Assembly (NCBI GenBank): GCA_040285825.1
Contig: JAUPSS010000001.1
Span: 310,001 to 374,000, forward strand
Reading direction: 5' to 3'
Length of the DNA: 64,000 nucleotides
DNA from: Eukaryota sp. TZLM1-RC
Lineage: Eukaryota; Protista; Metamonada: BaSk clade
Shown here: piece after piece, positions 9,426 to 62,147 of the stretch
Position numbering within the stretch: position 1 is the first letter of the stretch
How the letters are laid out: each line of letters opens with the position of its first letter
Notes under the pieces: generated by a model
What the model was told of the DNA's origin: nothing
The model's input: only the letters and a program-made list of their open reading frames with translations
The model's database searches: none
Made by a program: the position numbers and the translations under genes

Positions 9426-12122
9426 AAAGTATGCTGTCAATATTCTTTGAAAATTTTTTGGTTCTTTTTGTCCTCCTTTTGAACAAAATTTCGTAAATAA
9501 TTCCGAAGATTTAACTAATATAGCACCTAGAAAACAGTCATCTGAGAAATTAAGTAAAATTTTGGAAGACAAATGCTTTGACAACAAATGGTCCAAGGCT
9601 TTGACAGCTTTAAGCCCCGGAGTTAAAGCACCCAACAATGAAAAAACAATAGATAAACTAAAAATACTTCATCCTTATGAAGACCCTATAATGGATCAAA
9701 ATTTTTACGACACTTACTGGGAAAATTATCCATTGATGCCATCAGAAGTATTTTCGGTGATAAAAAAAGAGACCACGCGGTAAGTCTGCCGGACTTTCTG
9801 GTATTACTATCGATCATGTAAAAGCCGCAATTATTTCTTCAGAGGATTGTCTTGGTTTATTAACCAAATTTTTAAACAAAGTATTGACTGGTCAACTTAG
9901 ATATCCAGAAGAATTAAGAAGTTCTCGTTTGACTGCACTTGTCAAAAATTCAAAAATGGATGTTCGTCCTATTGCAGTCTCTGAGAGCTTACAAAATATT
10001 TTTTCTGCGTGTTGCTTGAACAGGTTCAATGAGAAAGCAAAAAAGATTTTATTACCCTTTCAACATGGAATTAATACCACTGATGGAGTCTCTTCAGCGA
10101 TATTTGCTACTGATGTATTATTTCGCCAAAATGAATCCAATGTTTGTATGTCATTGGATTTTAGTAATGCATTCAATTCACTCAGTCGTCGCAGTATCCA
10201 TGGTGCTTTATTGCAATATGCGCCTGAATTAATGCCGTATTTTCAATCAACATATAGCACATATTCTAATTTACATTTTGGTAATTGCATTTTGAGTTCA
10301 TCAAGTGGTGAAAAGCAAGGAGATCCGTTAGGACCTCTTTTGTTTTGTTGGACCATTCATCCTATTTTATTGCAAATTTAGGAGATGTTTCCTTCGCTAA
10401 AAATGATTGCATATATGGATAATGTTGTGCTTATTGGTGATTTAAATATTGTGAAACAAGCAATTGTATGTTTTAAAGAATTATTTACCAAAATTGGTCT
10501 CCGACTTAATTTACTTAAATGTGTTTTGTTATCAACTACTTCAGTTTCCACAATAGTTGATGGTATTGAAATTCAAGCCAAATTATATTCAATTGATGCT
10601 ATTCGTCGTTTGGGTTCGTTTTTAGGAAATAATGATGAAATTACCAAAAAATTGTTTCAAAAGTTGAACTCAATTTCTGACAAAATTGACCAAATAATGA
10701 ATTCAGATATACAAAAACACATCAAATTTACCATTATAAGACTGTGTTTTAGTTCCAATTTCAATCATATATTTCGATCTACAAATCCTCTTGTCACTAG
10801 GCCTTTGGCTCAGAAATTTAATGAGTTACGTGCAAAAGTTCTGTCTCAATTACTGGGATGTAAAATGTTCCAAATTCCAGATCATGCTTTTCTTAATCCA
10901 CATTATGGCGGTTTAGGGTGGACGAAGGCTTCTATTCTTACCTCGTGTGCTTTTGTTGGTGGATGCAGAAATGCAATTTTTGAGTTTTCCGAAAGATTTG
11001 CAGATTGGGAAGATTTATTGATGACAACACAAAGTTCCACTGTTTTTGCGTTAAATGAAGAAATTTCAAAAATTGATGTAGAACAATGGGGTCGATGTTT
11101 TCCCCAATCATTCAATGGCAATATTCCAGAAAAGAATGTTTTAAATTTGAAGTACACTCTTCGAACATTACAGAAACGATTGACTGGAATGTATGAAAAT
11201 GATCTTTATAATAATATATGCAGCTCGGCTGTTTTAAATCAAGATCTTCACTCATTGTTACTGGAAAAGGGAGTTTGTGAAAGCAAGTCATCAGATTCTT
11301 CACTTTTTGTAACCATTGTACCACGAAGATTTGGATTGTGTGCCACTAATGAAGCATTTGTAACAAAAATGAGATTATATTTGAATATCCCCATTAATCA
11401 ATTATTATCAAAAGAAAAATGTATTTGTTCGTATTGTTTGTATTTGTTCACCTCAACTCACTTTGCGCCATGCTCTGAATTGCTCTAAATTGATAACTTA
11501 TCGTTCTTCATTACATGATGCTGTTAGAGACACTGTTTTCAATATGGCACAAACTGCAAGGATATCGTGTATCAAAGAGCCCCTGCTGAAGGAAACACTT
11601 TCTCTGAATAATTTTGGTTCTGATGACAGAGGTGATGTATACTGTGATTGGATTGATAATTCTGAAGCTATTGTTGACTTTGTTTCATGTAATGTTGCAA
11701 ATGATACTTTGGTTCACAGAAGAAAACTTAATCCTGTGACTGCTCTTGATTTTAAAGCAAAAGAGAAAAATAGAAAATATGATAAAGATATTGAAGAGGC
11801 TAATGCCGAGAGAAATACACAGCTGGTTTTTATTGCTTTCCCATTTTCGATAAATAAAAGATTATCAGATGAAGCAGAAACTTTTTTGAATGACTTCCAA
11901 AAAATGGTGCAAGAAAAAACAATGAAAAGATTTGATATTTTTTTGTGGCGTTCACGGATTCAATTTGCCATTATTAATAGATTACCTCGGTTTTTCAATC
12001 GAATAAGAGAAGTTTTAGCTAGACAGCAAGCAGATCAAGATTTTGTAGAGGAAATCTTGGTTCAATGATAGTCCTCCCATTAGTTATCAGTTAATTTAAT
12101 TAAGTGTACAAATTCAATAAAT
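9426..12122 (+). mobile_element. Non-LTR retrotransposon, RT + zinc knuckle + RLE (CRE-like, family A); longest copy, with stops and frameshifts
   Basis: RPIAVSE, LDFSNAFNS, QGDPLGPLLF, YMDN (YMDD in the copy near 63830), GGLG, CIC..HALNC, HDAVRD, RGD..D..K..KY; conserved 3' UTR ending AATAAAT. The 5' boundary is approximate. Confidence 0.9.
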
Positions 12123-12356
12123 ATTAAATTTAAGTAAATGTCTAAAAAATCTATACAACACGTCACTAAATACGTTTCTACACTAGGATTACATCTACTT
12201 CAGGTCATATTACCCCATTGTGCACATATGTATGCAGATTTTGTTTGATTGAAAGTACCAACAGTGCTCCTACCTCATGTTAGATGTCTGCTAAAGTTTC
12301 CAAGTGATACTCTTGTTTTCGCATCCCTTCAACACATAACACCACTGTGAAGTTCA

Positions 12357-13930: not shown

Positions 13931-14178
13931 TTACGAATTTGTGGAATGATGACAACCCAACCAAACTTCACTCACCAACTTTTGTAACATGTAGTTCTTG
14001 TCTGAAGAAAGGAAAATATTCAGAAAGTAATCTTGAACGATATGTCTCATTAATAAACACTTATAACTAACTGTACTTTGAATTGACAACTATAAGATTG
14101 ATTGACTTCAACAAAATTTTAATTTTAGGAAACAAATTTTCAATCATTTCTGACTGTTTCCGTTCTGTGTTGACTGCC

Positions 14179-15840
14179 ATGGATAACGTTCTACAAACTA
14201 CAACTGTGGGAGCGTCTGTCAACCAGTTCTTCGACTCAGAGGCACAAGAAGCTATGGAACGCCAGTTCCAAGTTCTTGCTAGTATTGGAGCTCATGCTAC
14301 TCACCTAGCACAACTCTTTGTGCTCCAATACCCAGAACACTCTATGTGGCTAACTCAAAGCCAGTTCTGGAGCCTCTGTTTCGACTTTGTTTGCCAAAGT
14401 GAGCCTAAACAAAGGAGGCCATTTGAGAACCATCCTTTGGTTTACCAAGCGCTGCAACACCTTGTTCAGCACTTTTGGCCCTGGAGACCGCTGAATGAAA
14501 CCAACTCAGCTGACGGTGGTAGATTTTGGTGTCTTTCCACTCTTCTTGGCAGTCGAGCCATCCAACTGCGAGAAGCCTTTTGTCAGTTGCTTGCTGACGG
14601 CCCTGTTGTCTGGAAACACAATTTTTTCAAGAGCTGTGCTCAGTTTCTAAATTGCCCTTGGCCCAAGAAGTACGCCGACTGTGTACTTCAAGGGATTCAG
14701 CCAGATGAGTCAATTTTAGAATGGCATCAAGAAATACACCAGCATATCTTGGTCCATTGGCTCAATATGACAGCCAACACCCATATTGGTGGTGGTTAAA
14801 ATTTGTTCGAAAATTCAATAAGAAACGAACGATTTCCCATCAATATGGAGTCTGCGGCAACAATCGTTCAATCTGCCTTGAACATTTTATCTTTTTTAGA
14901 AGATAACTGCCCTGATGTGATGAAAAGGCACTCTCTCTCCACTGTCCAGTTGGTCTCCATGCTTCTGCAGCTTGACTAAAAAAACAGAAGCTTATTTCAC
15001 AAAACTCAATGCAAACAAAGAGCTTTTGAACAACCCTTATCGGTTTTTTAATAAATCCAAATTTATTAACTATACCATTTTTTCAAATGGTGATTCCTTG
15101 CGGTTTACGTTTACCCAAAAGGAAAGAAAAACTTATAATAGGCCAAGTAAAGCGGAATTTGAGCCCAGGCGAGCCTCTGGAAATTATGATTTTCATAACT
15201 CTGAAAAGAAACGAAAATCCAATGTCCATAGAACAGCAAATCCACAGAGAAGACTGCGGTTACCAGCGGAACAACAGCCCAATTACAGAGATCCTGATGA
15301 AAATTTGTTTTTTGTAGCCATTGATCCCAACCACAGCAATCTTTATGGTTGGACTGCTGGTTCTTTCCGAAATTCTGCACCTGTTTTTGAACGTTCTGGA
15401 CTGCTACTGAATCGAAAAGAACGAAGACTAAATCACCCTCCTCCTCTCACTCAAGCAACTCCTAACACTTATTCCGCTCAGAGCTTCCAAGAGTATCTGA
15501 TTGAAATAAGTTTACCTTATGTTTCTGAATCTGAGGAAGAGCCTGAATATTCTTCAATTATGTCTGGAAATTTGCAGCGTGGTGCAAGAAAAAAATTGAG
15601 AAGAAATAAGTTTGATTTCTTCATACGAAGGCAAAAGAGAATAACTAGTTTTATTAACAAAATTAAACGCTGGTCTGAAGGAAGAAACACTATAGTTTGG
15701 TTCGGCAATGGCGGTGGTGGTCCATCTCGTCAATCTGTGAAATCCCCCCGAAAGAGATTTCTCAAACAAATCAAAAAACACTTTGAAAGCCTCAAAGTCG
15801 GGGACGAGTTTATGACCTCAGCAACAGTGAATTGCTGTAA
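14179..15840 (+). pseudogene. Fanzor (eukaryotic TnpB-like) relic A: stop at 14797, frameshift near 14935, truncated after the first zinc-finger cysteines
   Basis: RuvC-I FFVAIDPN; IVWFGNG..SP..RFLK; RuvC-II DEFMTS..CC; N-terminus resembles the ORF at 20860-22044; no RuvC-III. Confidence 0.8.
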
Positions 15841-15934
15841 GGTCATTCATAGAAAGTCAATATTCACTCTGTGTAAAATTCTCAGAGGTAATTCAACTTT
15901 CAAAACACCACTTCTTTCCATTCTTTCAGTAAGA

Positions 15935-19303: not shown

Positions 19304-19557
19304 GTGGTTTCTTTTTTCTTGTTTTTTTGGGATCTTTGTCTTTATCAGTCCATTGCTTCAATTTTTTGTAAATCTGTTATTTAAATGCTCTTTTGATTTA
19401 TTGATATCCATTTCTATCGCTATAATATTCATCTGTACAGTAATGGTCACAACAATCTAAGAAAACAAACAAAAACCTTTCTAAAGAAACAATTGCTGTA
19501 GCAATGTTAATTTGTAGATTCTTGTAATCTTTGAGTAAATAAAAGTTATAGAAATTC

Positions 19558-19735
19558 TGTATTGAACTTCCACACTTAACAAAATATACTCATAACTAAT
19601 GGGACGAAATTCATGGAACCAAGATTTCCTATACAAAATCTTGATCTACTTGCCGTCTCGCTAAAGCTTCTGTGACTCGATTGAAAAACAGAGGCAATCT
19701 ATAAATTATGGCAAATTAAATTCAAGATTAAATTC
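19558..19735 (-). mobile_element. Short diverged 3' fragment of retrotransposon family A
   Basis: Matches the family A C-terminus and 3' UTR (CATAACTAATGGGAC..AACCAAGATTTCCT). Confidence 0.75.
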
Positions 19736-19798
19736 ATAAGAGGATTGAAATAATAAATAATATAATGAACAGCTGTAAGTTGTAGTTTCATACATACT

Positions 19799-20065
19799 GT
19801 GAATTTCACTTATCATGCATTCCCCTGTGAAATTCACTCCTGTTTTCAACTTTCTCAATGTCTACTCACAGGTTGTAAGAGACATGTAGCATCATTTGAC
19901 AAAGACAATCATGATCTTCATCAATGGGCTACCTCACTTAAATACACCTACTGCTTTCACAGAACAAAGCCTCGCGACTTGATGTATCTAAGTGGATCTA
20001 CCAAATGCTACTAGGGCATTTGTAGATCGGTCTCAAAAGTTTTTGTTTCTGCTCAGGTTCCCCAT
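19799..20065 (-). ncRNA. Candidate Fanzor omegaRNA scaffold (about 270 nt) directly 3' of the Fanzor stop codon
   Basis: At least seven stems, with G-U wobbles and a GAAA tetraloop that work only on the minus strand; position matches TnpB/Fanzor omegaRNA loci. Confidence 0.7.
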
Positions 20066-22044
20066 TCATCTTCTCAACAGAGCATCTGGGCAAATGTATC
20101 GCTCCGGCCACAATTCCGCTTTCTTCTTAATTTGAATATTTTTTGCAGCGGAAATATCTCTGTCATATACTATTTGACACTCAGTACAAATACGCATCTG
20201 CCATGAGCCTGCTTGAATATTCTCGGCCATGCAACAACTTGACATTTTGCTTGTATTAAATTCACTGGTTGACAAGTGCTTCACGTCCTTTTGATAACAC
20301 AACCATTTTCTGAAAGCTCTTGCTGATCCATATCGATTGACTTTTCGGCAATGAGAAGGGAAATTAGCAGAACCCACAGCAAGATAGAGTTTTTCAGGAT
20401 GTCCAGCCAGCCTTTGAAATTTGTTGAGACTCTCTCTGAACCGTCTCTCTTTTCGTCTGCGGTTATCAAATTTAATTATTTTCCATTTCTGGCGATTACT
20501 TTCCAAATACACTTTCCTCCTGACCAAATTCCAATGGTTCAAATATTGGTTGAAATTTTGAACGGAATATTGGTTGGGAGAGTGTTTACTGGGTGAAGGT
20601 TTTGTCACGTATCTTCTGCCAGTTGGACAAGGGATAACTCCACATTGATTATCATTTAAGAAGTAACCACATAATCTTGATTGGCCAAGATCAACGCCGA
20701 TAAGGGGCCTTTCAGGTAAAATTTCGACTGGATGTCTACGTCTTCGACGGGGCATTTTTTTAGTACCCTTCAACTGTGTTTCTCTGGTTTTGTTGGCATC
20801 AGGGTCACTTTTTCATTTCATTTTTGATCTTCTTTTTCTTTTTCGGTGGTTCATCCAGCTCATCTGTGTTTTTCTGAGTCATTATTTTTACCTTCAAAGG
20901 TCAAAAGCAGTTCATTACCATTAGTTTTCAATAAAATTTTGTTAAATCTATTTTTCAAACTTTTTCTGTTGATATTGAATTTTTGGTAAGGACATTGTTT
21001 GAATACTCGTTTCAGACATGTATTTTTGATAAACTTTGTTTTGGAAGATGATCCTTCAATAATTGGAAATTTTTTCACAGAGTGGAAAATTTGTGAAGGT
21101 ACCTCAATAAATTTAGAACCTTTATGAGAAGCTAAAGGTATTATTCTAAATTTCTTCCAGCAATGCATATGAGAAAAGAAAGTGAGTAAGTATTGTGAAA
21201 TTTTAAGATTGAAGAGAAAAAGCTCACTAATTTCCTTTGATGAAAAAGTGATTTTATCATGTGAGGACAGTAGGGAGGCAGTGGTAGGAAATCTTTGAAA
21301 GAGATTCAAGATAAACCTACATGCATTCAATAAAAAAAATCTTTCTCTTGAATTATTCAAATTGAAATTGATGAGGTATTCAAGAACAGAATCAACTACT
21401 ACTTCCTCGGGTTGGGCTAGTAGTTCATCTGGCAAAAGTGAAAGAATATTATTTGCAAAGACATTTGTTTTATTCAGGGCTCTACAATGAGCACGAATAA
21501 AGTTTTTTGTCCAGGATTGACAAATTTTGGGTAAACATGTCTTAACGTTGGAGGCCAATTGACGAGCCCGACAAGCAAGGTAAAGAGAAAGCCCTTTTCT
21601 ATTGATAAAATTACAGTTCTGGGACTGCAGCCAATCATTGAGGAAAAGATTGAATGAATTTCTGTAGGGCACTAAAGAATTTTCCCACACAGAAACAAGA
21701 GACCTGTCTTGGGGGCATTCAGGAAGAAATCCATTGTAAAAGATATGGAGTAATTGGCGTTGGCCTTTAGATGTGGAAGGCTTAGGAAAAGAACCAGTGG
21801 TGATGACGGTCATAAACAGATACCATACATCCTGTTCCACTAAAGCTCTAGATGCCAACGGAAAATTTAGAAGAAAAGATTGAAGTAATAAAGAAGCTTC
21901 ATGACAAATCTCGGTGACCACTGGAAGGTCAGTCCGAATTTGTTGCACCGCTGCAGGGGTCAGCAGCGAGTTAAGTGCACAAGACCGAGTGAATACACGT
22001 GATACAGAGGGGTGTCTGACATGTAGTGAGAATAAAGAGCTCAT
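20066..22044 (-). CDS. Fanzor (TnpB-like RNA-guided nuclease) B, about 649 aa when reconstructed; putative intron 20864-20891 plus a 1-nt frameshift at 20809-20813
   Basis: RuvC-I LIGVDLG, LAVGSANF, RuvC-II SEFNTSKMSSCC, zinc finger CTEC, RuvC-III DRDISAAKNI; N-terminal ORF has Fanzor-like FRIIPL..FIEV and KTNG..L.LTF. Confidence 0.85.
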
Positions 22045-22217
22045 CTATCAAATTTTACACTTGTCACCCATTTTCGACTTCTGGTTGCCTATTCTGGGAG
22101 GTTTTTAACCCTCAACTTGGTTTTGGGAGGTTTTCACTATTCCCACACTTTCCCCTCACTTCATAAACTAGGTTCATAAACTAGGTATCCTTTGTAAAAG
22201 TTGCACTGGAGTAGTCA

Positions 22218-22622
22218 ATGACATCCATATACGACCACCTACTACCATGCTTTCTATCTGAGTTCTCTGCTTGTCACATGAACTGCTTTTATCACAAGCC
22301 TCCCCTTCTTGCTCAATTTACAGACCACCGATCTTCGTTTATCAATATTACACTGAAGCACCTCCTCACCTCAGTAATCCGCTCTCTTAAACTCAAAGAT
22401 CCACCCATAACAATATACTCTTCCTACTCTGTCTTTCACTCACATTTACCCCTCCTCTCCTTATCCCAGCGAAAGACACTTTGTGAGATCATCTTCTCTA
22501 CTCTTTCGCCCTTCCATCCTTCTTCTTCACCATTAGATCCTCATACTCCATTTTTCTCTCCTGATTCTCTTCATCACCTCACGCACCTTACCACTACCCT
22601 ACTCCAACAAGAGGAACATTAA
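22218..22622 (+). CDS. Hypothetical S/L/H/P-rich ORF, possibly a detached 5' part of the downstream SMYD gene
   Basis: ATG-initiated 134 aa; C/T-rich composition like the 5' ends of host genes in this window. Confidence 0.35.
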   Translation: MTSIYDHLLPCFLSEFSACHMNCFYHKPPLLAQFTDHRSSFINITLKHLLTSVIRSLKLKDPPITIYSSYSVFHSHLPLLSLSQRKTLCEIIFSTLSPFHPSSSPLDPHTPFFSPDSLHHLTHLTTTLLQQEEH

Positions 22623-23091
22623 TGTAATGTAAGATGCTTTTGTTAAATTAATTAATAATAAATCTAATATTCCCTTCGTTTACCATTTCAACATTCATTA
22701 GTTTTAAGTCCCAGTATGTATAGTGGACCATCTCCACCATCTGATTGTGCTGCCAAAACTTGCGGATTCCTACTAATAAATTTAATAAATTTGAAATTCT
22801 ATTTAATTCACCTTCATCCAATGAAGGTTAGATATCTTGATTTAGACTTGTTGACCAATAATGTTGACCAATCATTAAGCCATATTTATTTCTATGCAAT
22901 ACAAATCCAACTATCCTTGTTGTTGAGCTTTCATTGACAAGCTTCTTCCTAAAGTTAACAGAATGATCATAAGGTAACAAACCAGCAGCTATAATTTCAT
23001 CACACAACAATAATTGAGAAACATACATAAAGTGACAATCTAATAACATTTATTAAACATTGACCCACTTACTAATTCCCTAATTGCATCA

Positions 23092-24438
23092 ATGAGTGTC
23101 GCTCTACGGGAATCAGCTGCTGTCTCTTCCCTTCGCAACGCGTTCTTTAACCGCTGTTGTGCACATTGCTTCAAACTTCGAGCCTCACCAGATAATGTTG
23201 CCGAGTGTGAAAACGAGGTTTTCTGTGACAACTGCAGTCTTTGCTTCTGCTCGAGTACTTGTCACAATACTGCCACATATCATTCTTTTGAATGCGATTG
23301 CTTCCACTCTCTCACCAATACTGAGCTTGACGCTGATCGAGAGTTAATTCGCATCGTCATCAGAGCATTGGAACTCAAAAACTCAAACTCACACCTATTT
23401 GATCAAATCCTATCACTACCAACATTTCCAACCAAATTTAGTGATCTAACCTCAGACCTAAAGGAACATTATGGTCAGGTTGCTGAGTACATAACCCAAT
23501 ACATCCCCTCTGATCACGTTTCCAATGATGTAATTTTGACCCTTTGCCATGTTGTCAATTGTAATGCTTTTGGACTCCAAGACTCACTCGCTTTGGGTAT
23601 CTTTGACGTCGGCATTGGTCTCTTCCCCAAGTTGTCCACGATCCCCCATTCTTGTGTACCTAATGCTGTTCTCTCTCCAGTAAAAGGAAAGTCTTTTGAA
23701 ATCAGAAGACTTGACCCTCATGACACGTCATCCAACATCACTATTTCCAAACTATCTTCCCTTGCCTTACCCTTACTTGATAGGAGGGAAGAGTTGAACT
23801 CCATGGGTATTGATTGTCAATGCCCACGATGCATTGATTCAGAAGTGATTAGAAAAGAAGCAAAGTACTATGGATGGATCTGTCAGTCCTGCAGGGAAGG
23901 ACTTCTTGAAGAAAGCAAAGAAACTGAAGATCTTTTTTGTTTGGGATGTGGCAAAGTAACAAGGAAAGAAGCTATTTCAGATCTGGCAAATAAAATGGTT
24001 CAATTCATCCATTTAGGTAACTCACAATTAAGGAGAACTGAATGGAAACTGGTTCAAGCAACATTTGAGAAGCTGTTGAGCGAGTATAGTCGATTTATCA
24101 CCAAGGAAGCGAGTAATAATGCTTTAATTAGGCTTCCTCTAATGGTAGCACTTGAAAATCTAGGTTTATTTGATGATGCTTGTAGTCATGGAGCTGCTGC
24201 CTTGGATTTTGTTAGGGCTCTTCACCCCGAAAATCATCCCAAGGTAGCTGAAGTTTGTCATCAATTAGGAGAGGTTTATTTATCAAAAGCCAAGTATTTA
24301 TTATCAAGTAAACCAACCTTGGCCAAGTTAGTTCGTAAGCAAGGAAGGAATTACTTAGAAGAAGCTGTTAGAATTAGAAGTATTTGTTTTGGGGAAAATC
24401 ACAGAGTGACAAACGAATCTAGGAAATATTTAAAATAA
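23092..24438 (+). CDS. SMYD-like SET/MYND protein with C-terminal TPR region
   Basis: CAHC..CDNC..FCSSTC MYND, NCNAF, GLFP..PHSCVPNA, post-SET CQCPRC, HPKVA TPR-like helices. Confidence 0.85.
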   Translation: MSVALRESAAVSSLRNAFFNRCCAHCFKLRASPDNVAECENEVFCDNCSLCFCSSTCHNTATYHSFECDCFHSLTNTELDADRELIRIVIRALELKNSNSHLFDQILSLPTFPTKFSDLTSDLKEHYGQVAEYITQYIPSDHVSNDVILTLCHVVNCNAFGLQDSLALGIFDVGIGLFPKLSTIPHSCVPNAVLSPVKGKSFEIRRLDPHDTSSNITISKLSSLALPLLDRREELNSMGIDCQCPRCIDSEVIRKEAKYYGWICQSCREGLLEESKETEDLFCLGCGKVTRKEAISDLANKMVQFIHLGNSQLRRTEWKLVQATFEKLLSEYSRFITKEASNNALIRLPLMVALENLGLFDDACSHGAAALDFVRALHPENHPKVAEVCHQLGEVYLSKAKYLLSSKPTLAKLVRKQGRNYLEEAVRIRSICFGENHRVTNESRKYLK

Positions 24439-24591: not shown

Positions 24592-24878
24592 AAACAGAAT
24601 GACCTGGTTACGTGCTTCCTTGTCAAACAACATGGACGTTGATTCCTCTATGGAAAAAAGTGTAGTTGAAGTGATATCAGCAGAACTCAAGGTCTGGACC
24701 AACATGGAACGGTATCTACAGCCTCTTACTGAACCAGAAGGACATGTTCAAGTTATACGTTCCATATTGATCCAGACCTTGAGTTCTGCTGATATCACTT
24801 CAACTACACTTTTTTCCATAGAGGAATCAACGTCCATGTTGTTTGACAAAGGAAGCACGTAACCATGTCATTCTGTTT
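24592..24878. repeat. Long fold-back inverted repeat (about 125-bp arms, about 40-nt loop) derived from the gene family seen at 34021-34823
   Basis: 24592-24715 is the near-perfect reverse complement of 24755-24878; the arm encodes DVDSSMEKSVVEVISAELKVW. Confidence 0.9.
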
Positions 24879-25126
24879 AATGGCATTGTTTTCTGTGGTA
24901 ACGTTTTGAAGATGTACAATGGGCAGAAACCCAGATAGAAGGAATTAGTAACGTGCTACAGATTGATCCATCTGGACAACCTCCAAGATCATGTACCCTA
25001 GTTTCATACCATCAATAAAGCTCCATCAGTAAAGCTAATCACAGAGCTGAAGATGATAAGACAGCGACTTTAGATATGAAAAACAGATATTGAACAGGCA
25101 GAAATTTTTTTATGTATTGTGGATTT

Positions 25127-26442
25127 CACTAGGCCTTTGGCTCAGAAGTTTAATGAATTACGTGCAAAAGTTTTGTCACAATTACTGGGATGTAAAATTT
25201 TTCAAATTCCAGATCATGCTTACCTTAGTCCACATTATGGCGGTTTAGGGTGGACGAAGGCTTCTATTCTTACCTCGTGTGCTTTTGTTGGTGGATGCGG
25301 AAATGCAATCTTTGAGTTTTCTGAATGATTTGCAGATTGGGAAGATTTATTGATGACAACGCAAAGTTCCACTGTTTTTGCATTAAATGAAGAAATTTCA
25401 AAAATTGATGCAGAAAAATGGGGTTGATGCTTTCCCCAATCATTCAATGGCAATATTCCAGAAAAGAATGTTTTAAATTTGAAGTACACTCTTCGAACAT
25501 TACAGAAACGTTTTACTGGAATGTATGAAAATGATCTTTATAATAATATATGCAGCTCGGCTGTTTTAAATCAAGATCTTTACTCATTGTATTTGGAAAA
25601 GGGTGTTTGTGAAAACAAGTCATCAGATTCTTCACTTTTTGTAAACATTGTACCACGAAGAATATGATTGTGTGCCACTAATGAAGCATTTGTAACAAAA
25701 ATGAGATTATATTTGAATATCCCCATTAATCAATTATTGTCAAAAGAAAAATGTATTTGTTCGAATTCACCTCAACTCACTTTGCGCCATGCTCTGAATT
25801 GCTCCAAATTGATAACTTATCTTTCTTCATTACTTGATGCTGTTAGAGACACTATCTTCAATATGGCACAAACTTACAAGAATATCGTGTATCAAAGAGC
25901 CTCTGCTGAAGGAAACACTTTCTCTGAATAATTTTGGTTCTGATGATAGAGGTGATGTATACTGTGATTGGATTGATAATTCTGAAGCTATTGTTGACTT
26001 TGTCTCATGAAATGTTGCAAATGATACTTTGGTTCACAGAAGAAAACTTAATCCTGTGACTGCTCTTGATTTTAAAGCAAAAGAAAAACATAGAAAATAT
26101 GATAAAGATATTGAAGAGGCTAATGCTGATAGAAATATACAGCTGGTTTTTATTGCTTTCCCATTTTCGATAAATGGAAGATTATCAGATGAAGCAGAAA
26201 CTTTTTTGAATGACTTCCAAAAAATGGTTCAAGAAAAAACAATGAAAAGATTTGATATTTTTTTATGGCGTGCACGAATTCAATTTGCCATTATTAATAG
26301 ATTACCTCGGTTTTTTAATCGAATACGAGAAGCTTTAGCTAAACAGCTAGCATATCAAGATTTTGTAGAGGAAATCTTGGTTCAATGATAGTCGTCCCAT
26401 TAGTTATGAGTTAATTTAATTAAGTGTGCAAGTTCAATAAAT
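25127..26442 (+). mobile_element. 5'-truncated retrotransposon family A copy, multiple stops
   Basis: High identity to 10795-12122; imperfect TSD TATGTATTGTGGATTTCACT / TATATATGGTTTTCACT. Confidence 0.9.
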
Positions 26443-27280
26443 ATATATGGTTTTCACTTCTATCGCATAAAAACAAATTTTAGACCTCTCTTCTAGTTTG
26501 TCCCTGATGTCTTTTCCTGTTGACTTTGGTTCCACATTGAATAGTCCTCGTACTCCAGCCCAAGCCTTCTTAGCTTTGAACCATGAATCTCGTGGAGACA
26601 TTACTGCTGTTTCATCCCGTTCGTTAACCGAACAGTTGCTTTCGGTGGATGACAATGCACAAGCATTTGAGGGTCCCGTTATTTCCAAAACCTTCTTTAC
26701 TGGCTCTTTGAAAAAGGTAGTCAAACCTTTTTGGACAATAATGCATAAGTCTTTGTTCACCCTAATAAAGACCTACTGGATGTTTCTGGTTTCTTTAATC
26801 ATTTTGTAAATCTGTACTTTGAGGAGTGTCAACGAAACAGGAGGTCTCATGTGTCCAAAAGTGTACTTCAGCTCAAGTATAAGACTGCAGCTAATGCTGC
26901 CTTTAAGCAAAACCTCACTAGTTCTTTGCTTGAGCGGTACCTCTATGACTCTGAGGCTGGTCCTACTGTCTGTCTCCAGTTAGCTCCAAGAACCCTGAAC
27001 AGAGCTGAATTCAACCGAATGTGCCAAAAGTATAACAAGCAAGAAGCCCGATCAATTACTCTTGAAGACTTAAAATATTGATATTCTGGCCCCAGATGTT
27101 GCATGGAGGACTTGGCGAAGTCTTTATGAGTCTGGAAAGGTAGACCTCTGCACTATTCCATATTCACTCGGAAAACTCTTCACGACAAAAGGGCCTGTGG
27201 CTGAGATGTCCGAAGACCATATTCTTGCTAAAAATTTAGCACTATTTGTTGTCAGAAGATTGAGTGCATTGGACGTGAAG

Positions 27281-34020: not shown

Positions 34021-34823
34021 ATGAAACGAACATCCCAACGATCCACGCATTCACATAAGAGAGTCAATCAAGAAGAATCCACGGATACAAGATCCCAACT
34101 TCTTCCGTATGTACATCAAGCAGTAGCTGACCACAGTACCTTAGAGAATAATGACTTGCATATTTGCAAGAGAATTTGAGTAACATTGGTCTTGAACGCA
34201 TGTCACACTGCTACTTTGAGAGCTGTCTCCTGAATAAAAGTGAGCTCAGTATCGATGCCATGTCACCCCTCAATGAAACAGATACTGCTGCATTACATAA
34301 TCTCAAGTCTCAATGCTCATTCGATACCTACGAAAGCAAGTTCATTTCAGAAATTGAAGATTATGTGATCAATTATAACCTTCCTGACGAAGTTCAAAAC
34401 AAACTTAATTTCTCCCATGAAGAGAAAGCGGAAGCTAGATGCTTTCTTGGTCATGTTTTATGGTCAATGTACACCTCCTTCGACGTTGATTCCTCTATGG
34501 AAAAAAGTGTAGTAGAAGTTATAACAGCAGAACTGAAGGTCTGGACCGAAATGGAAAGGTACCTTCAGCCTCTTGCTGAACCCGAAGAACATGTGAGTGT
34601 TGAAGATACTCCTCCTCCACATCGCTCCGTTTTTGACCAAATATTGTTTACAATGGAAAAAGGCTTTGAATCTATGGCAAATGGCATTCAACGGATGGAA
34701 AACCGCTTTGAATCTATGGCAAATGGCATTCAACGGATGGAAAAAGGCTTTGAATCTATGACAAATGGCATTCAACGGATGGAAAACAGCTTCGAATCTA
34801 TGGCAAAAGAATTTCACCAATGA
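34021..34823 (+). pseudogene. Member of an uncharacterised repeated gene family with a C-terminal coiled-coil repeat; frameshift near 34165
   Basis: Two overlapping ORFs; a paralogous segment is present at 24600-24750. Confidence 0.5.
34653..34807 (+). repeat. 42-bp coding tandem repeat (MEKGFESMANGIQR), about 3.7 copies
   Basis: ATGGAAAAAGGCTTTGAATCTATGGCAAATGGCATTCAACGG repeated without spacers. Confidence 0.9.
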
Positions 34824-35573: not shown

Positions 35574-35743
35574 TACATAGTCTATAGTCTATCCTTTGGT
35601 TTTTATCAACTTTGGCCAGTAACGAATAGTATTTGTGAGAATTTTACCAGAAACAAAAATGAATTAACATTTTATTAATTCGAATCAAAATCCTAAGAGA
35701 CCATAGGTAAAGCCTTATTAACTAACTACCAACGGCAATTATT

Positions 35744-36358
35744 TAGTATTTATTGAATTTGCACACTTAATTAAATTAATTCATATCTAATGGGACGAAT
35801 ATCATTGAACCAAGATTTCCTCTACAAAATCTTGATCTGCTTGCTGTCCAGCTAAAGTTTCTCTTATTCGATTGAAAAACCGAGGTAATCTATTAATAAT
35901 GACAAATTGAATTCGAAAGCGCCAAAAAATAACAAATCTTTTCATTGTATTTTCTTGAACCATTTTTTGGTAGTCATTCAAAAAAGTTTCTGCTTCTACT
36001 GATAGTTTTTTGTTTATCGAAAATGGGAAAGCAATAAAACTAGTTGTTTATTTCTACCAGCATTAGCTTCTTCGATATCTTTGTCATATTTTCTATGTTT
36101 CTCTTTTGCTTTAAAATCAAGAGCAGTCACAGGATTAAGTTTTCTTCTGTGAACCAAAGTATCATTTGCAACATTACATGAGACAAAGTCAACAATAGCT
36201 TCAGAATTATTAATCAAATCACAGTATACATCACCTCTATCATCAGAACCAAAATTATTCAGAGAAAGTGTTTCCTTCAGCAGAGGGTCTTTGGTACACG
36301 ATTTTCTTGTAGTTTGTGCCAATATGAAAACAGTGTCTCTAACAGCATCATGTAATGT
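35744..36358 (-). mobile_element. 5'-truncated retrotransposon family A copy
   Basis: LHDAVRD..RGDVYCD plus 3' UTR; perfect 13-bp TSD AACGGCAATTATT at 35731-35743 and 36359-36371. Confidence 0.9.
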
Positions 36359-46163: not shown

Positions 46164-46874
46164 TCAACAGGGTGGTTTTATTCGAATTCTTACTCCAGAT
46201 TCTACCTCTATTTTACTTACTGCCTCCTCTATGCTATCCCAAATAAAAGACCTTATTTTTATAGGTAAGACCTTTGCTAGAGCTAATTCCTCAAGTTTTG
46301 CCTCAAAGTTGATAGGGTTTTCTCGAAAAGCTTGCATGGCTCTTTGCATGAAAACTATCGAGAATATGCCACAATCATTACCATTAGTCTGCTGATCGCA
46401 ATTGAGTTCTACGAAAGTTGTATCTTCGAGGGACATTTCGGTCGTCAGTTTAGAGGCGATGTCAAAAGCTGCTTGATTGTTGTGCATGAACAGTGAGTCT
46501 AAATGAAAAAATGTGAGTGAAGGTCTGTGAAATACGAGGGTGCTCCAATGGCTTCCCGCTTCTGCTTTGTCTATTTCAGTATGTGTGACATCAGAAACAG
46601 CAAAGATTACTAGATTAGCAGTGTCAATTTTAGAACCTTCAATCACAGATCTTGTATCTTTTTCATCCCCAAAGCGTATGAGCATCAGTGCTGATGGTTG
46701 GATGAATGAAATATCAGTCTCAGGGTATAGTTTAGAAAAATATAACATCATAAAGGAAATTATCGTGTCATTGAGCCAACGTCCTGGTGAAAGCAGATTC
46801 ACATCAGACTGATAAACAGTAAGACCTTCAAAGCCGAAATACGATGTAGTATTTGAAAGATGCCTTGAGTACAT
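46164..46874 (-). CDS. SENP8: NEDD8-specific protease SENP8/NEDP1 (Ulp1/C48 family)
   Basis: DVNLL...WLNDTII.F, GSHWS, DS, QQTNGNDCG; catalytic domain only. Confidence 0.85.
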   Translation of the reverse strand: MYSRHLSNTTSYFGFEGLTVYQSDVNLLSPGRWLNDTIISFMMLYFSKLYPETDISFIQPSALMLIRFGDEKDTRSVIEGSKIDTANLVIFAVSDVTHTEIDKAEAGSHWSTLVFHRPSLTFFHLDSLFMHNNQAAFDIASKLTTEMSLEDTTFVELNCDQQTNGNDCGIFSIVFMQRAMQAFRENPINFEAKLEELALAKVLPIKIRSFIWDSIEEAVSKIEVESGVRIRIKPPC

Positions 46875-47574: not shown

Positions 47575-50146
47575 ATTTATTGAACTTGCACACTTAACAA
47601 AATAAACTCATAACTAATGGGACTAAGTTCATTGAACCAAGATTTCCTCTACAAAATCTTGATCTACTTGCAGTCTAGCTAAAGCTAATTCGATTAGAAA
47701 ACCGAGGCGACCTATTAATAAAGGCAAATTGGATTTGAGAGTGCCATAAAAATTAGGGTTAATTTCATAAATATCACTTCTCAGACAAACAATTTCATAA
47801 ATATCATTTTTACAAAGTGAAGTTCACTCCCATCGCTACACTGAAATGAACAACCCCATTGTCCTTAGAGTCGATGATGACTTTCAATCTATGAAAGTTC
47901 TACGACAGACCATACAATTGTTTGAATCACAAACAAGAAAAGAACAAAACTCTTACGCCGAAGAAGTGACAAGCACAATATTACGCTTTGTTGTCGGCAA
48001 GTGGGTTGCAACTTCGCGCTGCGTTCAACTTCAAATATGGCAGTATTACAAAGCTCAAAGCATTTAGAACCAGGAATATTTGTAGAACAATGCGATGAAT
48101 GGTATCATGAGTATTTCACTCAAGGCCTACAACTTTCTGCAAGCGGTTGGTGTGGAGAATTGGAGCAGTTATATGTTCAAAGGACAGACCTACGGACATG
48201 TGACCAGTAATGTCGCAGAGTCTCTCAATAGTTGGATTAAGTCACTGAGAGGACTACCAATTGTTGTCATGTTGGAAGTTTATAGAAGGAAATTAATGGA
48301 TTGGTTTATTGCAAGACATGAACAGTCCCAAGTCTATCTAAGAAAGAACATGTTGATTGTACCAGCAATTCGAGAGAAAATATTGCTGAACCACGCATAA
48401 ATCAGATCGTTACCCGGTAAAACTAGCTAAACAAGATGGAACTGTTATTAAAGCTGAAGTAGGTTCTGCTGCAAACACTTACGTTGTTAAGTTGAGTGAA
48501 AGAAAATGTGATTGTGGTTTATGGCAAAGAGAAGGATACCCATGTAGTCATGCTTTAGCAGCATTCTCTGAAATTGGAACAGCTTCCATTGAAGGTATTG
48601 ACCCAGTGTTCTTGACACAAACATATTCAAGGGTATATCAGAAGAGTTTAATGCCCATTCCCGACAAAAAAAGATGGACTGGAGACGAAACTCTTATGAA
48701 GCCATTACCTCCTCTCTTGAAGGCTAAGGTAGGACGTCCAAGAAGGAAAAGAATTCAATCAAAGCCGAAAAAACGCTCCATCATGACTAAGTATGTATCT
48801 GCTGACAAACAAAGAAAAAGTTGCTATTCCGAAGACGACAACTGGTTGATTGGACGTGTAAATTCTCCTCAATCACAAGAAGAAGTCAATGTTGAAGATT
48901 CTCAAGATGAAGAATGGGTTATGAGTGATGTATTTGTTACTTCAGATAGTGATGTTGAAGAGGATAGTGATTCACCAGCAGATGGATTTGATATCCAGTA
49001 GATGACCATTTGAAAATAGAATAAAACTGATATTTATGAAACTAAGACACAAGAAAGTGACATTTGTGAAACTTGTGTGTTGGAAAAGTGACATTTGTGA
49101 AATTGCCCCTAAAAATTATCAAATTTTTTCATTGTTTTTTCTTAAACCATTTTTTGGAATTCATTCAAAAAAGTTTCTGCTTCTACTAATAGTGTTCCGT
49201 TGTTGGAAAATGGTAAAGCAATAAAACAAATGGTGTATTTCTTTCAGCATTAGCTTCTTTAATATCTTTGCCATATTTTCTATGTTTTTCTTTGGCTTTG
49301 AATTTAAGAGCATCTACATGATTATGTTTTCTTCATTGAACCAAAGTGTCATTTGCAACACGACAGGAGACAAAGTCAACAACAGCGTCAGAGTTCTCAA
49401 TCCAATCACAGTATACATCACCTCTCTCATCAGAATTAAAATTATTCAATGACAGTGTTTCTTTCAGCAGAGGCTCTTTGATACACGAAATTCTTGCAGT
49501 TCGAGCCATAATAAAAACAGTGTCTCTAACAGCATCATGTAATGAAGAACGATAGATTATCAATTTCGAACAATTAAGAGCATGACGCAAAATGAGCTGT
49601 GGTGAATTTGAACAAATACATTTTTCTTTTAATAATAACTGATTAATGGGAATATTCAAATATAATCTCATTTTTGTTACAAACGCATCATAATTAGCAC
49701 ACAGTCCAAATCTTCGTGGCATAATGGTCACAAACAGTGAAGAATCTGATGACTGATTTTCACAAGCACCTTTTTCCAATAACAATGATTGGAGATCTTC
49801 ATTTAAAACAGCCGAGCTGCATATACTTTTATGAAGATCATTTTCATACATTGTAGTCAGGCGTTTCTGTGATGTTCCAAGACAGTGTTCTAAATTTAAA
49901 AAATTCTTTTCGCGAATATTGCCATTCAATGATTGGGGAAAGCATCGACTCCATTTTTCTACATCGATTTTTGTAAATTCTTCATTTTAGGCAAAAAAAG
50001 TGGAACTTTGTGTTGTCATTAATAAATAATCCCTATCAGCAAATCCTTTAGAAAACTCAAAAAGTGCATTTCTGCATTACACCGATAAGAGCACACGAGG
50101 TAAGAATTGAGACCTTTGCCCAACCTACACCGCCATAGTGTAGACT
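47575..50146 (-). mobile_element. Diverged retrotransposon family A copy split by a Mutator insertion
   Basis: 47575-47755 and 49110-50146 are colinear with family A. Confidence 0.85.
47756..49109 (+). mobile_element. Mutator/MULE element, internally deleted
   Basis: TIRs GGGTTAATTTCATAAATATCACTT / AAGTGACATTTGTGAAATTGCCCC; 9-bp TSD TAAAAATTA at 47747-47755 and 49110-49118; TSNVAESLN, R.LPI, SWIM finger CDCGLWQREGYPCSH, GRPRRKR. Confidence 0.92.
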
Positions 50147-50839
50147 AAAACAAAAGAAATAAGCATACAAATATAATTGATCATTAAGCATGATCTATTC
50201 ATCCACACCGATTGTAAAATTCTCAACAGTTGAACTCAGCTACACTTTGTATTACAAACATTGATGCCTAAAGCTTTTGCATATTGATTACACAAAAGTG
50301 CACAAGTTCAATATTGTTGTTGAAAAAGTTGAAGATATTGGACCAGCAATGTTATGATGCTTGTCAAACAGTTGTTCAAATTATCAATTTTTTGAATAAT
50401 AAAAAAGTCTTAAATGGACATAACACAATTCAATTTTAACTATTTTAATTAAGATTCTACTTGGTACTGTAGTAGTTCATTTTGAACTGCTGTTGCCTAT
50501 TATTTCGCAAGGTTTTGAAAATTGGGAGCTTCAGCTTCGTCTAACATAATTGTTTGTGATATGTCATCAAGCTGTATCAGACAATTATTGTATACTGAGC
50601 TTACCGTATTTATTGATCAGATGAATTCTGCTGTATATCGCATAGGAAAATTAAGCACCAGTTATTTAAAACGATTTTCACAAGATGTTTGGGAATTAGT
50701 CATCAGAATTTGCAATGAGTAATTCCTTATTGTAAAAAAGAAGAAATGATGAATTACAACATTTAAAATGAATCAATTCGGCAAATATTATTTACATTAT
50801 TTTCCGTGACTATATCAATTGGCCACTGTATTGGGGGGC

Positions 50840-51416
50840 CATTGTTGAACCAGTCAGTTGCCTACTTGATGTTGGCATTGTGCGTTGTTCCAAAGCATTG
50901 AAAATACTTTGCAATAATCCTCGTCATGAGACTCTTCTCGCTAGTTTGTTTGCTTTTTCAGACAATAACTCATCGACTTGTTCCACACCCTCTTGTTCTA
51001 ATAAATTTTTTTGACAGCTTCAAAACGTGTTTCAAACATCTGAATCATTTTTTCAATAACCGTTTTCGGAGAGAATTTGGAACGACGTGTTGAGCTCGTT
51101 GTTCCTGCCTGCATCAAGTGAAGGAGCCACTGCAGCTACAGTGACGAGAGGTTTAGTAGAAGTTTGTTCTTGAGAGTTGGACGCTTCATTCATGTTGGAG
51201 TTTACATGATTGAATGATGCTTGTGATCTAGCGAAAGCAGCAAGAATCGGAGAGGGGGAATGAATGCTGAGCCTGTTCGTTTTTGGCCAGGTATCAATAA
51301 AAAGAAGACAAAATTCATTTTGGCAATTTCCAACAACACAATATCAAAATTAGTCTCAGTGAGACTAATTTGTGGTAAGACTAACTTCGTAGTGAGACTA
51401 ATTGTGATGAACGGTG
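50840..51416 (-). mobile_element. Truncated 5' end of the pogo-like element at 57315
   Basis: Same TIR and first ~575 bp, inverted. Confidence 0.85.
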
Positions 51417-52641
51417 TAGTTGTTTGCACAACCCCTGTTTGATATATGGATTTGCTTTAAGAATGCGATCGTTTGGATTACCGATTTAAATTTGAGTTAA
51501 TTGGAGAAATACTCTGCTTTGGAAAACTTATTAGAAAATCAATAGAGATTTGGTAGGTATAATGTATGCGAAACGTGTCCATAAAGGGTTTATTTGATGT
51601 TTGTGATGGGTTTAGTGATGTACTAATGAAAGTACCAAGTCATTGTAACCATCATGTAACTAAAAACACAGACATGGTGACATCATCAAATAGAACAGGA
51701 TGGATAAGTTACCATAAAAGAATTGGGTACAAAGTATCAAATTTTTCAGAGGTGGATAGATGTGTTCCACTTTTCAAAAACTAGGTAGACATGTCCCAGA
51801 CCCTAAAAATTTTTGTTTATTCAATTTCAATGCAAAGATTTTTTTATCGAACTCGGTGAGTGCGTCAATTATGTTTTAAATCAAAATAAACTTTATTTAA
51901 CATCTTGGTATTCATCAATGCCTCTTTGAATACATCAATTATGCAAGATAAAAAAGTACAATGTAAGTCGCTTCAGGCTATTTTTAGTAAAGGACAGGAA
52001 GGAGAGCACCATTTGCCGATTTTCAGTGTTCAAAATAAATGATTTCTTGCAATTTTGTGATTAGTTAAATTTGTATTTGTCTTTATGTTAATGATTAAAT
52101 AAGTTGTTTTACTTGAAACTCTATATTGATTTATGAAACAAGTTTGTTGACAAATAATCTTAATGGAAAAATTCATCGCACTCAAGCGTGTTCGTTCAAC
52201 TGGTCGAACTCTGTGCGCACTCGCACTTTATTTTTTAATTTAATTTGAATTCTCAAAATTCGTCATCAATTCCACCCATTGTAGCTCAAAATGATGAGTT
52301 GTAGTTCGGTGCCATAGTGTGTACCGCGAAATTGTTGCGTTTACTATCAATCCACTATTTGTCATACTATCGATCATTTGAGTGACCTTAAAGAAAAGAA
52401 AATTAAATATTATTATTCATTTAGTATATGATTTATTTCAATAAGAGCTATACGACAAAGTTAAAATTCTATATCTATTTCTATAATCATTTAGTTGCTG
52501 AATTTGTGTAAGCACTTTCAATCATTGGTACAATAAAACAATAACACTTTCTTTATCAAATCCTACCCCATTGTAAATTTTCTACCCAATTTTATTTGTT
52601 CCCACTGTTTTTCTACCCAATTTTTCCTAGAACACAGTATT

Positions 52642-52714
52642 GGGGGTGTAGCTCAATTGGTAGAGCGTGCGCTTTGCATGCGCAAGGTACGGGGATCGAA
52701 ACCCTGCATCTCCA
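52642..52714 (+). tRNA. tRNA-Ala(UGC)
   Basis: GGGGGTGTAGCTCAATTGGTAGAGC-GTGCGCT-TTGCAT-GCGCA...CATCTCCA; G3:U70 alanine determinant; followed by TTTT. Confidence 0.95.
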
Positions 52715-53099
52715 ATTTTCCGGAATTGTTAACTTCATTTTTGATTTCAATTGGATTCATTTCACCATTATTTTCCTTAACAAAGTCCTGAATTAAAACA
52801 GTTGATGGAGCATCTTCTGTGTCACTGTCTGGCATCTCCACATTTTTCCTGTGAGTAAAACTAAGACCAATAGAAATGCCAATTTGTTTGTATTGCTTTC
52901 TCAATTTCTATAAGCAGAAAACTATCAGTAGAAGCATGAATTTTTGGTATCCAAGTGGTGGTCCAAAGAAACAATGAAGAGATTTGATATCCTTTTATGG
53001 AGCTTTCACATTCAATTCGCTGTAATTAATTAATAAATTACCTCGGTTTTCATCAATTGAGAGAAGCGTCAATGAGTAAACACGCAGATCAGAACTTGT

Positions 53100-54262: not shown

Positions 54263-54275
54263 GATAATAGCGATT

Positions 54276-55512
54276 CAAATTCCAGATCATGCTTACCTTA
54301 GTCCACAATATGGTGGTTTAGGGTGGACGAAGGCTTCTATTCTTACCTCGTGTGCTTTTGTTGGTGGATGCAGAAATGCAATCTTTGAGTTTTTCGAAAG
54401 ATTTGCAGATTGGGAAGATTTATTGATGATAACGCAAAAATCCACTTTTTTTGCATTAAATGAAGAAATTTCAAGAATTGATGTAGAAAAATGGGGTCGA
54501 TGTTTTCCCCAATCATTCAATGGCAATATTCCAGAAAAAAATGTTTTAAATTTGAAGTACACTCTTCGAACATTACAGAAAAGATTGACTGGAATGTATG
54601 AAAAAGATCTTTATAATAATATTTGCAGCTCGGCTGTTTTAAATCAAGATCTTCAGTCATTGTTATTGGAAAAGGGTGTTTGTGAAAACAAGGTGTCAGA
54701 TTCTCCACTTTTTGTAACCATTGTACCACGAAGATTTGGATTGTGTGCTCCTAATGAAGCATTTGTAACAAAAATGAGATTATATTTGAACATCCCCATT
54801 AACCAATTATTATCAAAAGAAAAATGTATTTGTTCGAATTCACCTCAACTCACTTTGCGCCATGCTCTAAATTGCTCTAAATTGATAACTTATCGTTCTT
54901 CATTACATGATGCTGTTAGAGACACTGTTTTCAATATGGCACAAACTGCAAGGATATCGTGTATCAAAGAGCCCCTGCTGAAAGAAACACTTTCTCTGAA
55001 TAATTTTGGTTCTGATGATAGAGGTGATGAATACTGTGATTGGATTGATAATTCTGAAGCTATTGTTGACTTTGTCTCATGTAATGTTGCAAACGATACT
55101 TTGGTTCACAGAAGAAAACTTAATCCTGTGGCTGCTCTGGATTTTAAAGCAAAAGAAAAACATAGAAAATATGATAAAGAAATTGAAGATGCAAATATCG
55201 ATAGAAATACACAGCTGGTTTTTATTGCTTTTCCATTTTCGATAAATGGAAGATTATCAGTTGAAGCAGAAACTTTTTTGGATGACTTCCAAAAAATGGT
55301 GAAAGAAAAAACAATGAAAAGATTTGATATTTTTTTATGGCGTTCACGGATTCAATTTGCCATTATTAATAGATTACCGCGGTTTTTCAATCGAATTAGA
55401 GAAGCTTTAGCTAGACAGCAAGCAAATCAAGATTTTGTAGAGGAAATCTTGGTTTAATGATAGTCGTCCCATTAGTTATGATTTAATTTAATCAAGTGTG
55501 CAAATTCAATAA
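54276..55512 (+). mobile_element. 5'-truncated retrotransposon family A copy with an intact C-terminal ORF
   Basis: ORF 54261-55457; TSD ATAATAGCGAT on both sides. Confidence 0.9.
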
Positions 55513-55899
55513 ATTAATGATTAATAATAGCGATGTTGAACAACTTTAGCAATTTTTCCCAACGAACCAATTAGACCAATTATTGAAATGTCATCCAGAT
55601 AGGCTGTAATTTCTATTGCTGGGTATTGTTGTTTTAATTCACACATTGAAGTATAAATAGCAAGGCAGAAGAAGAAAGTACCTAATGGATCACCTTGTTT
55701 AACACCAGATTATTGTATCAGAATATAGTTTTCATATACAAGTGTTGATTCCAAACCGTAAAAATTGTAAAAGAATCAGCTTCCAAAAAATGAATTAAAA
55801 GCAAGAACAAAATTGATTACCTCTTCACTGCATTGAAGGTGTTTTTAAAATCTAAATTAAAAATATAGTTCGAATTACTTAAATTAAAAAAAAATCAGA

Positions 55900-61749: not shown

Positions 61750-62147
61750 TTGGTTCAAATTTGACATCATTAAATTTGAACTAATTCTTATGATTTAGCC
61801 CAATTTGGTAGTTTAGCAGCTTTTTGCCTGAATACTAAATGAGAGGCAAAGTTCACATTCTTTTCTACCCTGTAAGCCACAAAATTAAAACTAAGTTAAA
61901 TGAAAATAGAGTTTTTTTACAAAAGTTCTTATTTTACAGCTAATTTTGTTGAGTTTTTAGAAAATAAGTATTACAACTTAATCTCTTTTTTCCAAATACA
62001 ACTTTAATTGCACAAATTTGACGAAGTAAAAAAATAATACATAAATATTAAAAAATACACCAAAAACTGAGAAAATTCTTCCAAAGCTGACGTTTCCTTT
62101 TTATATAATGGAGATTTTTAAAACACACTAACCACTATGAGAATATT

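Follow-up and report, generated by a model that had tools for sequence, protein, structure and literature searches.

Identity of the element

The window analysed here (64,000 nucleotides of contig JAUPSS010000001.1) contains, from 23021 to 19797 on the minus strand, a frameshifted member of a young, many-copy mobile element of Skoliomonas litria (TZLM1-RC), a soda-lake flagellate. The element almost certainly carries Fanzor1, an RNA-guided DNA cutter. As an explanation of the whole, including scars of re-cutting at the insertion sites, we rather favour a non-autonomous, TA-inserting DNA transposon of Skoliomonas carrying Fanzor1. The family is new and lineage-specific, Fanzor1 being an already known kind of nuclease; profile, fold and element anatomy all identify Fanzor1 where the first-pass annotation had suggested a possible new nuclease system. 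That annotation had placed the Fanzor element at 22044-19799, where it was indeed found, but its true extent is larger.

Reading frame of the Fanzor1 gene

Two minus-strand ORFs, 20860-22044 and 20066-20773, were present in different frames, and had been joined into a single protein of about 649 aa. They do belong to one gene, but not by one joining event, since five one-base indels (22009, 20869, 20833, 20820 and 20809) were revealed by comparison with locus L001, which encodes the uninterrupted 651-aa protein P0053.

20066-22022, minus strand: Fanzor1 gene, 651 aa in intact copies, 97.8% DNA identity to the intact L001 (over 2381 bp)

Given these indels, the gene starts at the ATG at 22022-22020 and has a natural length of 651 aa; in intact copies the ATG at 22044 falls in another frame. 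As assembled, the window copy encodes no full-length protein. An intron or programmed split in the linker was considered and rejected, as intact copies are continuous there and the gap consists of four one-base indels, so that no intron is needed.

The window gene was either recently frameshifted or mis-assembled, with about even chances. The assembly (GCA_040285825.1) was produced from R9.4 Nanopore reads at 41x corrected with Illumina reads (PMC11316075), and the five indels could be uncorrected Nanopore errors in a repeat beyond the reach of short-read polishing, the gene being intact in the cell; the chance of this is put slightly below one half. In line with such errors, the four indels at 20869, 20833, 20820 and 20809 lie in A-runs within 60 bp, none of the five was shared by any of the nine other copies compared, and the window copy has no private stop codon, its private changes being 7 synonymous and 5 non-synonymous. 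Contigs from three short-read runs gave the uninterrupted form in all cases, but they merge all copies and have zero depth at the unique flanks 19400-19530 and 23068-23300, and so are no test of the window copy. Real lesions (stops and indels of 76-426 bp) exist in other copies, which speaks against assembly error. The question concerns the state of the window copy and leaves the family identity untouched. The description of the element as recent or still active holds for its recent spread, while activity could not be claimed for the window copy with its five frameshifts as assembled.

Catalytic motifs, fold and class of the nuclease

The D/E/D triad and the CC..CxxC finger reported by the first-pass annotation were all located, with every catalytic codon and the four Cys:

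20690-20692, minus strand: RuvC-I Asp (VDLG), aligned with Fanzor1 relatives
20261-20263, minus strand: RuvC-II Glu (SEFNTS), eight residues ahead of the first zinc-finger Cys
20177-20236, minus strand: zinc finger (TNB) of the CC...CxxC form, Cys at 20236-20231 (CC), 20188-20186 and 20179-20177
20156-20158, minus strand: RuvC-III Asp (DRDIS)

The split RuvC domain with D, E, D and with E a few residues before the zinc finger is a Fanzor1 feature, and so is the C4 zinc finger (TNB) followed by RD, for which Pfam PF07282 was matched over the cut-off (Cas12f1-like_TNB, E 7e-7 with the window ORF). The two ORFs were searched separately rather than as a joined protein; for the fold and profile work P0053, an intact copy occurring naturally, was used.

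A profile of 19 relatives matched SpuFz1 best in the PDB (E 3e-11 over 350 positions), meanwhile TnpB and Cas12m were matched at the zinc finger only. The AlphaFold model of P0053 (pLDDT 66.7, pTM 0.54) gave Foldseek E values of 1e-9 to 1e-6 for SpuFz1, PpFz1 and GtFz1, compared with 0.03-0.09 for TnpB and ApmFz2. Against the three Fz1 structures Z reached 18.7, 16.3 and 16.1, within a range of 15.7-18.7, with 460-500 residues aligned at an rmsd of about 9, versus 10.7 for ApmFz2 and 10.2 for TnpB. The modelled fold, with an enlarged REC/WED lobe, is thus nearer to Fz1 than to Fz2 or TnpB, and by this model the nuclease of the element is Fanzor1. The comparison with Fanzor1, Fanzor2 and TnpB that had been proposed earlier gave this answer. 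A Fanzor2 or IS607-type element was rejected, as 651 aa is not compact and TnpB-like, ApmFz2 was matched weakly, and no recombinase was found in the 12 loci fetched.

A categorically new class of RNA-guided nuclease could be argued from the lack of any sequence relative above 30% identity outside Skoliomonas, the CC...CxxC finger, an RNA region twice the known Fz1 size and the lack of an Rfam match. It is extremely improbable, since the structural match runs over the whole length (about 480 aligned residues) in all three solved Fz1 structures and the nearest outside matches are typical Fanzor1-like proteins; at the level of the predicted fold it is refuted.

Copies and relatives

The intact P0053 is one of more than 80 related ORFs. 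Clustering at 90% put the window N-terminal ORF in a group of 82 predicted proteins; other clusters contained 27, 17, 8, 5 and 4 fragments. Most of the S. litria ORFs were fragments; among the 120 S. litria sequences retrieved, the catalytic D, E and D were kept in 44/49, 28/30 and 21/25 of the sequences covering them. The recent multi-copy spread suggested by the first-pass annotation is borne out by this number of ORFs and by an intact copy at 98% DNA identity.

Relatives in GEM-RC1 were 58% identical and intact, with 646-648 aa (intact copies P0067 and P0071). Those in TZLM3-RCL were 32-41% identical, and were recovered by exhaustive search after being missed by a word-index protein search limited in the lengths covered. 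Outside Skoliomonas the nearest matches were two Fanzor1-like proteins (E about 6e-4), and the absence of any relative above 30% identity there agrees with the lineage-specific family proposed earlier. No match was found in JGI metagenome scans or viral contigs. The tree was midpoint-rooted and had no Fz2 or TnpB rows, thus it was not used for class assignment.

A second Skoliomonas clade takes in the relic at window 14972, to which the element has only 25% identity, in keeping with the difference in motifs noticed earlier. This relic (14083-15916, plus strand) of a second Fanzor1 clade has lost its C-terminal end and groups with RCL P0129/P0131. It runs in frame into a double glutaminase-ankyrin gene, giving a 1443-aa open frame to 19303.

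The closest RCL relative, P0142 (L011:8001-11972, Skoliomonas sp. RCL), is a 1323-aa ORF consisting, in order, of a short leader, a motif resembling 2A/StopGo (DVEPNPG), a 5' nuclease of the XPG/Exo1 family (Pfam XPG_N, XPG_I) and an intact Fanzor1. The same architecture was observed in P0137, P0138 and P0140, and a second RCL family, P0148, retains the tail of the XPG/Exo1-family domain. A resection nuclease fused to Fanzor1 in RCL would suit homing. A literature search found no paper on a fusion of an XPG/Exo1-type nuclease with Fanzor1.

Element ends and left arms

The collection of genomic copies, proposed earlier as a way to define the element, set the right end at CACAG (19797, 11 copies) and the left end at 23021:

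19797-19809, minus strand: inverted repeat of the right terminus, with CACAG as its last bases; the 11 copies are homologous no further than 19797
22023-22202, minus strand: upstream core of all S. litria copies, shared from 22202 or 22173 on
22203-22616, minus strand: type B upstream segment, 98.9% identity to L006 9406-9872
22617-22869, minus strand: 250-bp filler unique to the window copy, opening with an 11-bp tandem duplication and without a match in any fetched locus
22870-23021, minus strand: 5'-truncated remnant of a left arm of type A, consisting of the tail of a TCP-1 chaperonin gene fragment that was captured; 98-99% identical to the left arms of L001, L002, L003 and L007

At the right end CACAG is followed by TA, and a right-side TA was present in 11 of the 12 ends. 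Full copies have CTGTG...CACAG ends with a TA duplication; in L010, a GEM copy, a perfect 11-bp inverted repeat has TA on both sides. In type A full copies of S. litria the first bases are CTGTGGTTGAATTT, in type C CTGTGGTTTTCAC; both are degenerate versions of the right end. Defined ends and a target duplication make this a eukaryotic DNA transposon, as is found for Fanzor1, and the TA duplication and terminal inverted repeats (L010; TA in L003) are features of non-autonomous Tc1/mariner (IS630) elements.

No DDE transposase with the same termini was found in the window or the 12 loci, and no copy carried a transposase, which agrees with the transposase-less element described earlier. A TA-inserting transposase of the Tc1/mariner type presumably acts in trans. 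In L008 the terminus of another Fanzor family is likewise GAAATTCACAG, then TA, in keeping with a single trans-acting transposase.

That different family (L008:14446 and L008:273) has its right terminal 11-mer and TA in common with the present element. There G or A precedes the flank TA, and the RNA region is unrelated.

The upstream core is likely a promoter or 5' leader. A left end near 22085-22190 was rejected, as homology continues to 23021. With a type B segment common to the window and L006, the left arm of the window copy is a mosaic.

In type A, the left arm includes the 3' part of a TCP-1 chaperonin gene and, in antisense orientation, a piece with the MJ1316 domain. A longer chaperonin piece in L007 matched Cpn60_TCP1 (E 4e-27); we take the captured gene to be the zeta subunit. 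The left arms of types B and C carry other DNA. Such captured host fragments (L007:7400-7990, L003, L005 and L009) resemble the cargo of Pack elements. Read outward, the type B segment (window 22218-22622, plus strand) holds a 134-codon frame, which in L006:8446-9804 (minus strand) is fused in frame to a host coiled-coil gene, giving 452 aa. Docking at host start codons was not observed: no long ORF begins less than 20 bp from any of the 12 right ends, the nearest being at 21, 96, 104, 124 and 156 bp.

Neighbouring repeats

A 160-bp repeat at 19560-19723 was considered as part of the element and rejected, since it forms the 3' terminus of a non-LTR element of CRE-like type present in at least six other places of the window. 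Many 5'-truncated copies of this retroelement were observed (19560-19723, 10343-12125, 25126-26444, 35741-36357, 49081-50148, 54274-55514 and 62142-63912). In L001 the Fanzor terminal repeat is interrupted by a CRE-like copy that inserted with a duplication of 10 bp; in L012a it is the RNA region that such a copy truncates.

In addition, the window contains a 2-kb inverted duplication (50840-52830 and 55900-57892) of 99.1% identity with a tRNA-like stretch and no long ORF, a Ulp1/C48 protease ORF (46164-46874, minus strand) between retroelement fragments, and a 287-bp fold-back (24592-24878), which is 89% self-complementary and related to 34482-34594.

Predicted omegaRNA and guide

The region from the stop codon to the right end is very probably the omegaRNA of the element:

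19795-20065, minus strand: predicted omegaRNA scaffold of about 270 nt, its conserved core beginning near 20040; the terminal hairpin and TA close it
19799-19837, minus strand: terminal hairpin of 11 bp, with arms at 19837-19827 and 19809-19799; it overlaps the right terminal repeat and has one compensated pair in GEM-RC1
19780-19794, minus strand: predicted guide, about 15 nt of host flank past TA, the length taken by analogy (PMC10711439, PMC13565253)

The 272 nt from the stop codon had an MFE of -85.6 kcal/mol, against -62.2 +/- 5.3 for shuffled sequences (z -4.46), confirming the highly structured region described directly after the stop. The antisense strand reached -66.5 only, and the GEM version formed the same stems (z -5.06). 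Between S. litria and GEM-RC1 identity was 88% in the 3' region, compared with 74% in RuvC coding sequence and 40% at fourfold sites. The consensus fold has 76 pairs with 98.9% of cells paired, versus 35-42% in slid controls. Five pairs changed on both sides, and one-sided changes pass through G-U, which is workable on the sense strand only; coming from two lineages only, this covariation is support and not proof. An Rfam search of the region gave no match.

All 11 copies are homologous up to CACAG, meanwhile the flank beyond TA was different in every copy. A conserved, structured, non-coding 3' end followed by a variable flank is a further Fanzor1 feature, and the omegaRNA position at the 3' end, as first proposed, is supported by this structured region. 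At about 245-270 nt the predicted omegaRNA is likely about twice as long as those of the solved Fz1 (75, 90 and 150 nt; PMC11423790).

Target duplications and predicted TAM

The junctions of the window copy could be read as follows:

23022-23029, minus strand: left member of the 8-bp target duplication, TATGTATG, identical to 19796-19789 and exactly at the left junction
19789-19796, minus strand: right copy of the duplication, its first two bases being TA
23028-23031, minus strand: TAM predicted from the junctions (TT plus the duplicated TA; family consensus T-T-A, often W-T-T-A)

None of about 5000 random positions matched as well as this duplication. Its counterparts were 7 bp in L001 (obscured by a CRE insertion into the right end), 11 bp in L005, 10 bp in L009a, 4 bp in L007 and 2-3 bp in L003; all start at TA, and the four longest have P at most 0.003. 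No duplication was found at L006, L008, L009b or L012. Microhomology or short tandem insertions were observed at the left junctions of L001, L007 and L009a. In L009:7926-8570 the left side has two occurrences of the 10-bp duplication: one precedes a type C left end that was joined by microhomology, the other a triple 8-bp tandem. Two successive repair events at one site may be reflected here.

The left junction could be read in only six S. litria loci; T precedes TA in 6/6 of them, against 34% in the background, and L002 is irregular (TT). Known Fz1 TAMs include the left duplication (PMC13565253), which together with the T ahead of TA suggests, at the level of sequence, that the TAM probably contains TTA. 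The GEM copy L010 carries GATA instead and may use a different TAM.

Origin of the scars

In the proposed mechanism, transcription of the RNA would run past the terminal repeat and TA to take in about 15 nt of flank, and this RNA would guide Fanzor1 to the TAM and flank, that is, to the element's own emptied insertion site; both steps are established for Fanzor1 and assumed here. New insertions at TA would be made by a Tc1/mariner-type transposase in trans. After excision by the transposase, Fanzor would cut the empty site about 14-21 bp beyond the TTA-type TAM. The right broken end would prime copying from a filled template, so the right end would always be rebuilt first, and the left broken end would still hold part of the target. 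Complete repair would restore the element with a TA duplication. Aborted repair with microhomology joining would keep the right end intact, leave the left arm truncated or mosaic, and produce a longer duplication starting from TA, too short for re-cutting. The window copy, with its 8-bp duplication and mosaic left arm, may be a product of aborted repair.

Fz1 cuts 14-21 nt past the TAM (PMC10432273), and all duplications are shorter than this distance. That Fanzor cutting made the scars is given not quite an even chance. Somewhat more tentative is the full claim, in which TA-started duplications, the fixed right end and mosaic left arms record self-site cutting by Fanzor1 with abortive repair capturing host fragments, and an omegaRNA of about 270 nt, twice the solved Fz1 ones, is included. 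Cut-and-paste excision normally leaves a footprint, which could spoil the Fanzor target and counts against re-cutting.

The main rival is one-ended transposase integration: the transposase would join only the good right end at TA, leaving the other side to be closed by host repair, and Fanzor would play no part in the scars. The degenerate type A left repeat of S. litria means that such insertion could yield the same asymmetry. The degenerate left ends of types A and C, the clean TA duplication of L010 with its perfect 11-bp repeat, and a left flank shared by L012a/b, which fits variable-length copying, are all in its favour. By itself it predicts neither the T before TA, nor lengths under the cut distance, nor template-switch mosaics, and the similar pattern of the Chlamydomonas CRe-1/2/3 elements occurs in Fanzor-carrying but hardly in Fanzor-free Helitrons (PMC3627910). 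It is considered somewhat unlikely.

Spread through an RNA intermediate borrowed from the CRE-like retroelement would explain 5' truncation and variable duplications, such copies being abundant and one of them (19560-19723) lying 74 bp beyond the right end. It is already disfavoured and very improbable, as neither poly(A) nor a carried-over guide lies between CACAG and the duplication, the DNA-transposon ends with TA are exact, and the 5' arms are mosaics of non-collinear pieces.

If Fanzor re-cutting is true, it would also explain the CRe-1/2/3 scars, the cause of which was left open (PMC3627910). A literature search found no paper tying such scars to Fanzor cutting. With more than 80 young copies bearing measurable junction scars, the homing model could be tested by computation on one public assembly. 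Fanzor1 is hereby extended to the metamonad lineage Skoliomonas, and no paper mentioning Fanzor alongside Skoliomonas or metamonads came up in a literature search. P0053 (KAL0223451.1) provides a natural, intact nuclease with a defined RNA boundary and a predicted TTA-type TAM; its soda-lake origin may, speculatively, confer tolerance to salt or pH.

Comparison with known systems

The proposed cutting of the emptied site, with recombination restoring the element, is like the restorative homing of IS200/IS605 TnpB. That homing was demonstrated in bacteria for TnpB/IscB working with scarless transposases of the HUH or serine type, and no Fanzor1 case of it is given in the review (PMC13565253).

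Chlamydomonas reinhardtii CRe-1, 2 and 3 (PMC3627910) share intact 3' ends, frequent 5' truncation and extra captured 5' sequence, with variable duplications beside a T-rich motif (7-19 bp there, 4-11 bp here). They are Helitron2-type and lack a duplication when full-length, whereas terminal inverted repeats and a TA duplication were found here. A Helitron2-type Fanzor element was accordingly rejected, the likeness to CRe being in the scar pattern only.

GtFz1 and PpFz1 (PMC11423790) have the same Fanzor1 fold (Z 16), and an AT-rich TAM would be expected as in these. Their omegaRNAs are 150 and 75 nt, and the third catalytic position is N in GtFz1 but D here.

SpuFz1/SPu-1 of Spizellomyces punctatus (PMC10432273, PMC3627910; PDB 8GKH) was the best profile and fold match, with 11-12% identity in the structural alignment and a CC...CxxC finger differing here. 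Terminal repeats are 5-13 bp with the left often degenerate (30-33 bp in SPu-1), the conserved RNA region is about 245-270 nt (90 nt in SpuFz1), the predicted TAM is TTA-type (CATA in SpuFz1), and variable left arms with captured host gene fragments are found here, unlike in SPu-1. As in SPu-1, the element has a single ORF of about 630-650 aa without transposase, terminal repeats, a TA duplication ending the TAM, D/E/D with E beside the zinc finger, a predicted omegaRNA in the stretch from the stop codon to the right end, and many young copies.
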